Source: Octopus sinensis (taxonomy: Eukaryota). From it: DNA of 64,000 nt. The stretch covers positions 70,184,001 to 70,248,000 of the forward strand of contig NC_043005.1 in assembly GCF_006345805.1 (NCBI RefSeq), given 5' to 3'. Position 1 is the first letter of the stretch; each line of letters begins with the position of its first letter. Below, one piece after another: positions 2,121 to 56,057 of this stretch. Under the pieces are notes generated by a model. The model was not told the origin of the DNA, searched no databases, and saw nothing but the letters and a program-made list of their open reading frames with translations. Position numbers and translations under genes: made by a program.

Positions 2121-2361
2121 ACCAATTAAGGACTGAACACGAAAAAGTGGACAGTCAACATGCTAGATATAGACGTCAAATCGCCATTCTCCACAAAGAT
2201 TATGTTCTCAAATAAAATAAAATTCAGCACAGATAGATAGATAGACAGGTTGTGCTGAATTTTATTTTATTTGAGAACATAATCTTTGTGGAGAATGGCG
2301 ATTTGACGTCTATATCTAGCATGTTGACTATCCACTTTTTCGTGTTCAGTCCTTAATTGGT
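2121..2361. repeat. Near-perfect inverted repeat: 111-bp arms, 19-nt loop
   Basis: 2121-2231 is the reverse complement of 2251-2361 with one mismatch (2152/2330). Loop is GATAGATAGATAGACAGGT. Confidence 0.95.
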
Positions 2362-3177
2362 ATATATAAATATTTTAATCTTCGGATTCTTTTTAATATG
2401 CTAGACCACTGGTTTTAATTGACTAATATCAATTTTTACCTTTAATTAATTTTTAATTTTTTTTATATATATATATATATATAAAGTTAATCCAAACAAG
2501 AAAGCACAAAAAAACACACAGCAACGCGAGTGCGAGGAACAAATATAGTATTATTGGACGCTCAGGAAAGAAGGAAAGAAGGAAAGAAGGACACATACAC
2601 ATACAGTCGCACACACACACACACACACACATATATATATATTATATATACCTATATATATATATATATATATATATATATATATATATATATATATATA
2701 TATATATGTACATACACACCTCACTGACTGTAAGGTTGTACACGACTTGAAACTACCATTGATAAATTTGGTTGAGATTTTGTCTCATCATTTCAGTTTT
2801 ACACAATACACATCCACTCACCTCCGTTTTAGCATCGTTGCAGCACCTCGAAACCTTGCCTTCACTGCACTAACTTGAGGCAATCTGCTCTGGGGTTTTT
2901 TCTTTGCAAGGGAGGATAATGGGCTTGCGCTTTTTCTTTCTTTTTTTTAGCTACTGGCATCTAAAAGAAAGTGAGGTAGAGAATGATTTGATGAAAACGT
3001 GATAATAATTTCTGCACAATTATACAAATACTCTGAAGAAAATCCCCACTAGGATGGCTTGAGGTATGTCTTTTAAGCTTTATGTGTTCCTAGTCTCCAG
3101 GTTAATCACTTGTAGATTTTCTGATACATTTCCTGAAACAAAACGCAGGTGATATTTTATGAAAATATTGTGAGTAA

Positions 3178-3330
3178 GGGTCGTTTTCGATTAAGTCGAC
3201 ACCATTGCACTACTTATGCTATACACCCCGAAAGGAGGAAAATCAAAGTTGACCCAGGCAGTATTTGAACACACAACCTAAGGACGTACGAAAGACCACA
3301 AGGCATTTTGCCCGGCGTGTAAACGATTTC
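3178..3330 (-). mobile_element. Degenerate family A SINE fragment
   Basis: ACCCCGAAAGGAGGAAAATCAAAGTTGACCC...GCATTTTGCCCGGCGTG matches the reverse complement of the family A core and head. Confidence 0.6.
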
Positions 3331-5019
3331 AGTAATATTTGCCATTACTGTGAATAGATATACGCAATAATTTCGCATACCATACGATCCATATTTTTGG
3401 AGATTTAGTTGTGTTCATTTTATATAACAGAACGTTGCGAAAGACTTGTGGTGGTTGCCACGCTGGGTCTAGCTGAAAACACCCGCATTCTTTATCCTTC
3501 AAGCAATATAATCTATCCCTATTTCATTAGTTTGAGAGAAAAAATTGGATGAGTGCTACCAAGAAATACGATATTTTAGACTCTGAGTGAGGGAGGACAC
3601 GATATTCTATATCAAACAAACCTATGGCCACAACCATCACCTTCACTATCATCTCTTTCTTTTTCTATTTTCGTCATGATACATATATCATTTACTCACT
3701 CCGCTAATATTATATGTCAGAGAGAAAGAGAAAGATAGAGAGAGAGGGAGGGAGGTAGGGAGGGAGTAACAACAGACAAATAGAATGATAAGCAGACTGA
3801 GAAGCGGAAAATTCAGAAATATTGACGTCACGCAAAATATATAGGAAGGACAATCGGTATCGATGTAGTCTTTCTCATTCTCAATATATCTTCTCTCTAG
3901 TTATATACCTCTCTAAATGTATGTTCCTGGTTCTCGGTCTCTCCTTTTCCAACATTTTTCGAGGGAAGAGACTGGAAGATAGAGAAAGGGGGAGAGATTA
4001 ATTCAAATGTTCGATTTCAAATTTCTCTCTTCCTACGTGTATATTCTTCAGAGAAATGTGTTACTAAATCAGCTTTCATATGAATTGGCGAACAATTTTA
4101 CAGGTGGTTTGTTAATGTGCATTTTTGGACAAAGGGACTACATATCATTCGGTCTTTAGTTGTTTGTATTCTTCATCTATGTATGTGAATGTTTTTGTGT
4201 GTACATACACAAATACATAAATATTAATAGTTTACTGATTATATTTACAATTCTATGCTATCAATTATTACTTATTCTGATATGTTGTTTTAACTGAGTT
4301 TCATTTCAATTCATTCTACAGAATCTGTGTTATATAGTTTGTTATTTTCTTCGTTCTTTCATGTAATTATTTCTTCTCCTTCATCCTAAATTAATTTATA
4401 CAAAATTACTTGCTTTCTTTTATTTTTATAAATAATCTACCATGAATACATTCTTTCATTCATAAACTTGTTTAATATTTGTGTGTTAATTATCTCTGTT
4501 TATATACTTATTCATCCGGTTATCTTTAAGCTTATATGTTTATTTATAAACATCTGGTAAATGTATTGAAAGCAAGCAATATATTATTTATATGAAAAAT
4601 TTCATTATATTTTAATTGCAGCATTCAATATTTTTTTAAGAATACAATATAGTTTTCAAACATCCATTTCTGTGTATAAAGTCATACATTTGTCACACAT
4701 ACATAAATAAATACACATATCTGTAAATGTACATAAGTGGATACATATATAATATGCAAAAATTAATATGCAATTACACATATCCATCAACAACATATGT
4801 GTGTGTATATATAGGTATAAATATATACACACACATCTATATATATATATGTAGGAAAAATTACCATACATACATATGCATACATGTATACATGTATAGA
4901 TATAGATACGTATGTATGTGTTTTTGTACATATATGGATGTACGTATATATTTATAAATATATATATATATGTATGTATATATGTAACTCCGTGTGAATC
5001 ATTGGCGATTTTCTTCCTC

Positions 5020-54689: not shown

Positions 54690-55078
54690 GAGCGGCGATC
54701 TGGCAGAATCGCTAGCACACTGGGCGAAATGCTTAGCGGACTTTCGACAATCTTTAAGTTCTGATTTCAAATTCCGCCGGTGTCGACATTGTCTTTCTTC
54801 TTTTTTGGCGGGGGGGGGTCGATGAAATAAGTACCAGTTGAATACTAGGATCGATGCAATCAACACATCACCCACCCACCCCCACCAAAAAAAATTGTTG
54901 CCCTGTGGTAAAATTTGAAATCATTATTTCTTCTTTTTGTCGTTATTGTTGTTATTATTATAGCTATCCTCATCGTCGTCGTCATCATCATCATCATCAT
55001 TTTCACCATTGTCATGATCAGCATTATTGTTATTATTACTCCGCCAAAATTTCAGGCCTTGTGCCTATAGTAGAAATG
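54690..55078 (+). mobile_element. Family A SINE with T3-like tail, triplet tract, then a second T2 tail fragment
   Basis: Head GCGATCTGGCAGAATCG, B box TTTCAAATTCCGCC, core, tail ...GTGGTAAAATTTGAAATCATT. AAAATTTCAGGCCTTGTGCCTATAGTAGAAA follows at about 55047. Confidence 0.7.
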
Positions 55079-55964
55079 CTTATGAGGGGTTGCATTTGCA
55101 GAACAGTTCAAAAGACAGCCATGTGCCGTGGAAAATTTGTTCTGGTCCATCACATTCCATGATGAGATCCAATCGAATCGTGCTTTGGATGTCATTTTTC
55201 GGAAGTGTTAAAATTAAGTACAACACAAGCACCGTGTTTGAAAATGTCGAGTGAGCTTTCTCTTCAAAATTGCTGGTCTTGCGTGCCTGAATCCGAAATA
55301 GTTACTTTTATATTCTTGGTATTAACAGGAGGGATGTTTTTATTATTAATACCTATAGTTAGACTTTAAGCTAACTATAATTCCAGTAGGTTGTTTAGCT
55401 CATTCATTTTTATCCATTTGAGGCAGAACTGGAACAAAATTTTGTAAATGTTTGTTTGCAAGAAACATAAATTTGAACTATGTTGATGTCTTTAATATTT
55501 CGGAAGTCGGAGAGAGAAGTGAAGTGGAATAGTGAATGAGGAGTTGCAACTACTTCTACCTCCAGGTCTAATCTCTTTAGTCAATAAAAGAAGATTTCTT
55601 ACACCCCAAAGTACAAAGACTATAATGCTACAAAACCCATACCGTGGCGAGCAGCAACAGCAGCAATAGTAACAGGAACAACTGCATACATGCAACGAGC
55701 AAAAGATAAAAGAAAAAAAATTAGCCGCCGATGCGGTAGCTGCTTTAACAACAGAAGCAGCGTTCCGAAAGAAAATAGCAAGAGATATCTTCCATGACAA
55801 AAATAACGACTGCGAAAATTAACAAACGTCCTAAACCACTACAGAAGTCCAAAATACACAGGCACAGACATACAGACAGACAGATACACAAACTCATATA
55901 TAGGCAAAATTAATGTAGGTCACAAAAATTACTATCGCTACTTAGTCGTGTCGCCTTTAGTTAC

Positions 55965-56057
55965 TAATTGCTAATAAGCCACCATTTTCTTTAGTTATAT
56001 AATATATATATATATATATATATATAACTAATGAAAATGGTGGCTTCTTAGCAATTA
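55965..56057. repeat. Small inverted duplication: 33-bp arms around (TA)n, followed by (TA)n
   Basis: 55965-55997 versus revcomp 56025-56057, with two substitutions. Confidence 0.9.

Follow-up and report, generated by a model that had tools for sequence, protein, structure and literature searches.

The 64,000-nt stretch of Octopus sinensis DNA considered here (contig NC_043005.1, positions 70,184,001 to 70,248,000; hereafter the window, with positions counted from its first nucleotide) contains four places at which a segment of DNA is followed closely by its own reverse complement, with (TA)n microsatellite sequence at the centre or the end of the structure. The question raised by this locus is how these palindromes arose, and what part the TA tracts played in their formation. 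Our answer, to which we give a probability of about 65%, is that the four structures (E1 to E4, in order along the window) are germline local inverted duplications generated by fold-back (template-switch) synthesis hinged on (TA)n. Support for that interpretation is good in the case of E1 and E3; for E2 and E4 it is plausible.

The four young inverted duplications were found with an inverted-repeat scan combined with direct reading, and these recovered every structure, at its coordinates, that had been listed in an initial annotation of the window. Global alignment gave arms of 110, 320, approximately 400 and 33 nt for E1, E2, E3 and E4, respectively, with arm identities between 94 and 99.4%. 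In all four events the reverse-complement arms are adjacent to each other, ie the source of the copy is nearby, as in template switching. The structures are clearly non-random; in ten first-order Markov resamplings of the window there were no local inverted repeats of at least 90% identity. As single-stranded DNA they are predicted to form hairpins, with folding z-scores, computed against shuffled sequence, of -34 (E1), -59 (E2) and -12.7 (E4). Where the arms consist of unique sequence they differ by base substitutions, mostly transitions, and the inner TA tracts of E3 have diverged more, which is the pattern expected of aged copies.

The proposed mechanism would begin with a growing 3' end that stalls, or is freed, within a (TA)n tract. 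The self-complementary (TA)n would let this end snap back on its own new strand, or pair with the TA tract of the opposite strand, and backward extension would then copy between 33 and about 400 nt of flank, including, in E3, a resident short interspersed nuclear element (SINE). On release, the 3' end would re-pair through TA microhomology with the unreplicated rest of the TA tract, so that a single ancestral tract would be split into a central and a distal one. The product would have the layout A-(TA)k-revcomp(A)-(TA)m-B, which is that of E2, E3 and E4. E1 would be of the same class with a different hinge, the switch occurring at a GATA-type sequence, after which A and part of the upstream TA tract would have been copied in reverse before a return downstream. 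The anatomy, the junction sequences, the linkage to TA and the un-duplicated paralog of E1 are observed directly; the order of events, the choice of the copied arm in E2-E4 and the source of the 3' end, at a fork or at a break, are inferred. Both layouts, that of E2-E4 and that in which the inverted arm of E1 runs back into an upstream TA tract, were described in the initial annotation and hold for the events named. The two-switch (TA)n hinge that it proposed is favoured by the anatomy, with symmetry centres inside TA tracts and microhomology at the return, and for E1 by an un-duplicated paralog. The individual elements of such a scheme have precedents. Template switching makes new inverted repeats and requires no more than 2-3 nt of identity where the strand switches (PMC5453318), and it can generate hairpins de novo (PMC10710096); TA repeats form cruciforms, undergo breakage and are mended through microhomology (PMC13645644, PMC12972899).

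The paralog of E1 is the nearest thing in the window to an ancestral state. In a three-way alignment, the paralog (47557-47880) matches E1 colinearly over TA-A and again past A', but lacks A' itself; approximately 70 nt of its middle are replaced in E1 by the spacer, A' and a short TA run. The arms of E1 differ by one substitution (C/T) in 110 nt. Since A and A' are 99% identical and E1 and the paralog only 80%, the inverted copy is much younger than the repeat copy that holds it, and since the paralog is one-armed, E1 is a secondary local event and not the built-in terminal inverted repeat (TIR) of a transposon. As judged from this alignment, the left arm of E1 would be the original, and the paralog would show the un-duplicated layout, standing in for the ancestor as a paralog and not as an ortholog. 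The arm had been described initially as unique flank, which is incorrect, as it belongs to a repeat with this 80%-identical copy. The paralog also contains, near the place where the E1 copy ends, a short inverted repeat, aaaatttaaaggact / agtcctctacatttt, matching at 13 of 15 positions. It was not relied on as the cause of the E1 endpoint, as we estimate that about 0.4 such matches are expected by chance in approximately 300 nt of AT-rich DNA.

E3 is a palindrome of 1188 nt (13039-14226), and each of its arms is a composite of a unique segment A (112 nt), a TA tract (about 54 nt) and a SINE (about 230 nt). There is one transversion in the 112 nt of segment A, and the SINE pair differs by three to four single-base indels. 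The mirror SINEs share approximately 99% identity, as against 76-90% with the window's other SINE copies, and so derive from the duplication and not from two insertions. The mirrored TA tracts and mirrored unique flanks around them imply that the whole A-(TA)-SINE block was duplicated in inverted orientation. With composite arms of flank, TA tract and SINE in E3, and a one-armed paralog in E1, the initial claim that the arms are not transposon TIRs stands for these two events, E2 and E4 being compatible also with a fold-back transposon that has a TA target-site duplication. The SINE appears to be of cephalopod type. The outer arm of E3 was also considered as reverse-transcriptase sequence of a long interspersed nuclear element (LINE), which would have settled the polarity of E3, and that assignment was dropped, as Pfam gave no match and the tblastn coverage by LINE translations was confined to 12238-12725.

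The arms of E2 differ by two transitions in 320 nt (99.4% identity), and when it is treated as a full palindrome, 11328-11707 and 11708-12087 are 97% complementary with a spacer of 0 nt; the predicted free energy of the hairpin is -407 kcal/mol. The central tract carries an AA at 11697, 46 nt from its left edge, which is mirrored by a TT at 11723, 40 nt from its right edge. Part of the tract was therefore copied inverted, and the fold-back point lies within the (TA)12 between the two marks. The return junction reads ...cgttTA followed by tatata. On the 3' side of the distal tract lies a C-terminal LINE fragment (12238-12725, minus strand), which was identified by tblastn with related LINE translations.

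The arms of E4 have two mismatches in 33 nt (6%), and its return junction, ...caatTA followed by tatata, is of the same form as that of E2. A short distance downstream is E5, a candidate for a fifth and older event, which the initial annotation does not list. The right arm of E5 terminates within a 147-nt TA tract (56447-56593) and its left end adjoins tatatatta; its loop holds, at about 56306-56369, a second hairpin, nearly perfect, with arms of 25 nt. E5 may represent an early event of this class in which a later one is nested, or a miniature inverted-repeat transposable element (MITE). The positions of all parts of these structures are given in Table 1.

Table 1. Positions in the window of the parts of E1 to E4, of the one-armed paralog of E1 and of candidate E5. 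Basis is the method by which the feature was delimited, where stated.
Event	Feature	Position	Strand	Basis	Remark
E1	Upstream (TA)13 tract	2096-2121	.	direct reading	the inverted copy runs back here
E1	Arm A, probably ancestral	2122-2231	+	alignment	colinear with the 47.5-kb paralog
E1	Spacer cagatagatagatagacagg, 19 nt, GATA-type	2232-2250	.	direct reading, folding	hairpin loop; not a TA tract
E1	Arm A', inverted copy	2251-2361	-	alignment	
E1	tatatata after A'	2362-2369	.		interpreted as copied from the end of the upstream TA tract, and as the site of return
E1 paralog	Single arm, middle of about 70 nt, same right flank	47557-47880	+		about 80% identity
E2	Arm A, 320 nt	11331-11650	+	scan, alignment	single copy in the window
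E2	Central TA tract, 114 nt, about 56 units	11651-11764	.		symmetry centre
E2	Arm A'	11765-12084	-	alignment	ends ...ggacgttTA, the TA being common to the next tract
E2	Distal imperfect TA tract	12085-12187	.		then LINE fragment
E3	Outer segment A, 112 nt, GC-rich	13039-13150	+		single copy
E3	Inner TA tract, left arm	13151-13204	.		
E3	Left-arm SINE	13205-13437	-		88-90% identical to other SINEs of the window, about 99% to the mirror copy
E3	Central TA tract, about 390 nt	13438-13830	.		many interruptions; symmetry centre
E3	Mirror SINE	13831-14057	+		
E3	Inner TA tract, right arm	14058-14114	.		several differences from the left inner tract
E3	Outer segment A'	14115-14226	-		then one unmatched C at 14227
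E3	Distal TA tract	14228-14330	.		
E4	Arm A, 33 nt	55965-55997	+		
E4	Central TA tract	55998-56024	.		
E4	Arm A'	56025-56057	-		ends ...gcaatTA, the TA being common to the next tract
E4	Distal (TA)17	56058-56089	.		
E5	Candidate older event, 306-nt palindrome, arms of about 102 nt	56169-56474	.	unmasked scan	83% arm identity

The local inverted repeats found after masking of simple repeats were, in full, E1, E2, E3, two pairs of unrelated SINEs, a transposon-like TIR pair at 28127-28637, a hairpin at 60563-60638 and one false match, at 5471-5500, which was rejected as TA/TG low-complexity sequence alone. E4 and E5 appear in the unmasked scan.

How much weight the association with TA tracts can bear depends on how common such tracts are. 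(TA)n is by far the dominant microsatellite of the window: its perfect runs of 6 or more units number 66 and sum to 2.6 kb, compared with at most 12 runs for each of the other dinucleotides, and the tracts group into 51-56 clusters that make up about 5% of the sequence. Because the tracts are so abundant, mere proximity to one would be weak evidence. However, the probability that a random position is within 5 bp of a TA tract is 0.058 per junction, whereas in E2 and E3 the distance from arm end to tract is 1-3 bp at the centre and also at one outer end; for E2, E3 and E4 together, arm ends and the edges of the central tracts are 0-3 bp apart. A more specific comparison was made with a flank-swap null, in which the left flank of each TA tract (adjacent tracts merged) was paired with the right flanks of other tracts. 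The TA-anchored palindrome scores of E2 and E3 were 117 and 110, respectively, against a null maximum of 51, and the anchor of both palindromes is within 0-2 nt of the tract. E2, E3 and E4 each have their centre of symmetry inside a TA tract, and TA microhomology is present at the return junction in three of the four events (E1, E2 and E4), with a 1-nt mismatch in E3. A TA dinucleotide is found on both sides of E1, E2 and E4, and none at E3; it is, however, its own reverse complement and also belongs to the tract next to it.

Several observations weigh against this reading. The polarity of E2-E4 is one of them, as the ancestral locus could have been either U-A-(TA)-B or U-(TA)-A'-(TA)-B. All of the events are attested by one assembled sequence alone, and an arm divergence below 1% is in the range that heterozygosity could mimic if the duplicated arm were an assembly error. 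The TA beside E2 and E4 fits a TA target-site duplication equally well. The central tract of E3 is not cleanly mirror-symmetric. Finally, the flank-anchored scan of the 51 clusters of merged TA tracts yielded no further older TA-centred palindromes, so that, besides E4 (6%) and E5 (17%), palindromes of intermediate age are absent, which needs rapid loss, gene conversion between arms or a recent burst. The skew of the long palindromes towards youth fits the known instability of long palindromes, and would be explained equally by gene conversion between arms, by a recent burst or by an artefact. In the same way, gene conversion between arms could hold divergence down, and this limits the use of low arm divergence as a sign of an ongoing process.

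The same product could be made by repair of a double-strand break. A (TA)n cruciform would be cut, a resected 3' end terminating in TA would snap back and be extended by Pol theta or Pol delta, and microhomology-mediated end joining (MMEJ) would then connect it to the other TA-ended side of the break. TA repeats are documented sites of cruciform breakage, whose repair by Pol theta-mediated MMEJ uses the repeat as microhomology (PMC13645644), and break-associated fold-back inverted duplications are known in yeast (PMC11724301) and from the literature on synthesis-dependent MMEJ (SD-MMEJ; PMC5728401, PMC2943611). The TA microhomology at three of four return junctions, and the 1-nt filler in E3, are typical of end joining. 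However, published fold-back insertions are mostly 5-34 bp (PMC11724301), whereas here 110 to about 400 nt, and up to about 200 nt of TA repeat, were copied, which requires processive synthesis. It is for this difference in length that the break-repair route is ranked second; fork and break are indistinguishable from sequence, and we regard a break as a somewhat unlikely starting point.

A different origin would be transposition, with E2, E4 and E5 being fold-back or MITE-type DNA transposons that have long TIRs and a (TA)n core, and that inserted at a TA at the edge of a tract, so that the link to TA would be one of target choice. TA is the target-site duplication of Tc1/mariner-type elements. 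It flanks both sides of E2 (atg-TA-aacg...cgtt-TA-tat) and of E4 (ttac-TA-attg...caat-TA-tat), the window contains a mariner-type open reading frame (ORF) at 6022-6504, and elements that target TA are present in its TA tracts, at 43111-43676 (on both sides) and 28121-28649 (at the left end). The events share with the Tc1/mariner-derived fold-back and MITE transposons the long inverted arms, the hairpin potential, the TA flanks (E1, E2 and E4) and the setting in TA tracts. They differ in that such elements have both arms in every copy, while the sole other copy of the E1 family in the window is one-armed and the arms of E3 are composites of unique DNA, TA tract and SINE, with no TA duplication. 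There are no shared termini, ie no terminal motif is common to the arms of E1-E4 or to the two transposon-like elements of the window, and the arms of E2 and E4 and segment A of E3 have no other copy in the 64 kb. The 99.4% arm identity of E2, moreover, means that the palindrome formed very recently, whatever may have moved it later. Transposition fails as an explanation of E1 and E3, and is an improbable source of E2, E4 and E5.

The palindromes might also be errors of sequencing or assembly, arising from fold-back chimeric molecules or reads at TA tracts, or from wrong paths through an assembly graph. Self-complementary TA tracts are trouble spots for both procedures. Most of the arms are less than 1% diverged, several of the differences in the E3 SINE pair are single-base indels of the kind typical of long-read consensus error, and the structures are known from a single assembled sequence. 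Nevertheless, a fold-back read would give U-A-(TA)-A'-U' and keep going backwards, whereas the copies seen here stop after 33-400 nt and join (TA)m-B. This stop and the new neighbour mean that a second specific junction must exist in the reads. There are four such cases, each with its own arm length; the divergence of E4 (6%) and E5 (17%) is too high for two copies of a single locus, and the unique parts of the arms differ by the substitutions described above. The replacement of about 70 nt in E1 relative to its paralog is also a pattern of mutation and not of reads. An artefact is accordingly judged to be a poor explanation. Database searches supplied no counterpart of the locus: the window ORFs 12882-13304 and 6022-6504 had no exact database record, a homology search in which ORFs of the E1, E2 and E4 flanks and arms were joined gave no match, one with joined transposon-like ORFs gave no close relatives, and exact SINE-core patterns had no match in metagenome or prokaryotic genome contigs. 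Matches to the LINE-derived ORF were 50-70% identical fragments in three ENA assemblies of a different organism, almost without TA tracts, and were unusable as orthologs. The five 20-kb loci of another organism that were reached through the LINE ORF contained 0-1 TA runs each.

Fold-back synthesis hinged on (TA)n places the events close to a known class of mutation. On this reading they are a long-armed, microsatellite-hinged variant of the template-switch or fold-back mechanism, as described by the four-point model of Loytynoja and Goldman (3-2-1-4), after Ripley's quasi-palindrome model (PMC5453318, PMC10710096, PMC8794818). In common with template-switch mutations they show an insertion of reverse complement and a new near-perfect hairpin, and in E1 also the replacement of the sequence between the switch points. 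A short-range switch and return would be a further common feature, and in E1 it is borne out by the colinearity of both sides with the paralog. Microhomology is found at the switch points, with the first switch of E2, E3 and E4 inside (TA)n and a TA at the return of E1, E2 and E4. The published cases are mostly tens of nucleotides long, with hairpin stems of 30-55 nt in a microRNA study, while the arms here reach 320-400 nt, with a microsatellite as hinge in no fewer than three of the four events. Published scans for template switches masked or discarded events that overlap simple repeats (PMC10710096, PMC5453318), and a (TA)n-hinged class would therefore have been missed.

Other systems are more distant. 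The palindromic AT-rich repeats (PATRRs) of the human genome, PATRR11, PATRR17 and PATRR22 (PMC1851657, PMC3197554), are likewise near-perfect palindromes of several hundred bp with an AT-rich symmetric centre and the potential to form cruciforms or hairpins, and E2 (754 nt in total) lies within their size range and is, like them, a spacerless near-perfect palindrome. However, PATRRs are AT-rich throughout, whereas the A+T content of the arms here is 49% (E3), 65% (E1), 71% (E2) and 73% (E4), against 66% for the window. PATRRs are, in addition, defined by recurrent translocations at a few named loci, in contrast to many small events in ordinary local DNA with no known role in rearrangement. 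Fold-back insertions and SD-MMEJ (PMC11724301, PMC5728401, PMC2943611) have in common with these events that a 3' end primes synthesis on its own strand by means of a short self-complementary sequence, that a flank is copied inverted and that joining is by microhomology. Their products are about 5-34 bp; those seen here measure 33-400 nt, with long TA tracts in addition, and are both fixed in a germline genome and associated with one type of microsatellite. Origin-dependent inverted-repeat amplification (PMC4689423, PMC10766183), which also involves strand switching at short inverted repeats and inverted junctions, produces inverted triplications of kb to hundreds of kb that include an origin, and is excluded here, where the arms are sub-kilobase and each has exactly two local copies, not three.

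The remainder of the window is rich in repeats. A Tc1/mariner-like remnant (43111-43676), with TIRs of about 26 nt (acacttgcgtcggaaattaattagcac / gtgctaattaatttctgacggtagtgt) and, on its minus strand, the degraded remains of a transposase-like ORF, lies exactly between the TA tracts 43022-43110 and 43678-43804, as if inserted into one tract. A MITE-like element at 28121-28649 has TIRs of 73-85 nt (93-96% identity) and an interior of 365 nt, and its left end adjoins the TA tract 28041-28120. A second SINE-like type, GC-rich and about 160 nt long (5243-5403), is likewise placed between TA tracts (5167-5241 and 5405-5515), as is the SINE of E3. TA tracts seem to be favoured as insertion sites by several kinds of mobile element, or else the insertions seem to seed TA tracts. 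A direct duplication of about 350 nt (30299-30653 and 31012-31358, 81% identity) has the TA tract 30763-30872 between its copies, and TA tracts may thus be linked to direct as well as to inverted local duplications. The 76-nt hairpin palindrome at 60563-60638, with 38-nt arms of 84% identity, has no TA tract nearby; it may be part of a repeat, or the product of a small template switch unrelated to the others.

Partial SINE units, approximately 2.8 of them head-to-tail, form a tandem array at 20837-21547 with a period of 184 nt and 82-88% identity. Degraded mobile-element ORFs are present at 6022-6504 (+), 12238-12725 (-), 19557-20051 (-), 38491-38913 (+) and 44350-45319 (-); the kinds of remnant include the mariner-type N-terminal ORF, the LINE C-terminal fragment, a Helitron/PIF1-helicase-like remnant and other transposon- or retroelement-like ORFs, and all except the LINE fragment were assigned by visual inspection of motifs. 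Long, pure trinucleotide repeats, (TAT)38, (TCT)47, (TTA)25, (GTA)40, (AAT)43, (AGT)57 and (AGA)37, are clustered at 57954-60066 and 62141-62423, and the (TAT)n repeat (57954-58067) and the (AAT)n repeat (59940-60066) are inverted relative to each other, as a widely spaced pair. The window has no recognisable host exon, and Rfam gave no known RNA family in it and ARAGORN no tRNA gene. That the arms, if transcribed, would be ADAR or Dicer substrates, as the initial annotation proposed, is a conjecture.

What appears to be new is the (TA)n tract as a consistent hinge and landing site, the length of the arms, up to about 400 nt, and the frequency of four to five events per 64 kb, or approximately 6% of the TA tracts of the window. 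No description of a (TA)n-hinged class, in cephalopods or elsewhere, was found in the literature searched, a search that was incomplete. These events expose a blind spot of template-switch surveys, which discard events that touch simple repeats. If they were assembly errors, they would represent a specific and recognisable error pattern of TA tracts, which is worth screening for. It is possible, and we suggest it only tentatively, that (TA)n tracts are a frequent and continuing generator of long near-perfect palindromes in this TA-rich genome, overlooked through repeat masking. If the events are real and common, one abundant microsatellite would be able to drive the repeated birth of hairpins of hundreds of bp, and microsatellite content would be tied to the supply of long inverted repeats, with an origin for fold-back and MITE-like elements and for hairpin RNA loci, and with many cruciform-prone fragile sites predicted. 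If it holds genome-wide, the process would provide the octopus genome with a steady supply of hairpin loci, ie of potential substrates for double-stranded RNA pathways, of raw material for fold-back and MITE elements, and of sites of fragility.

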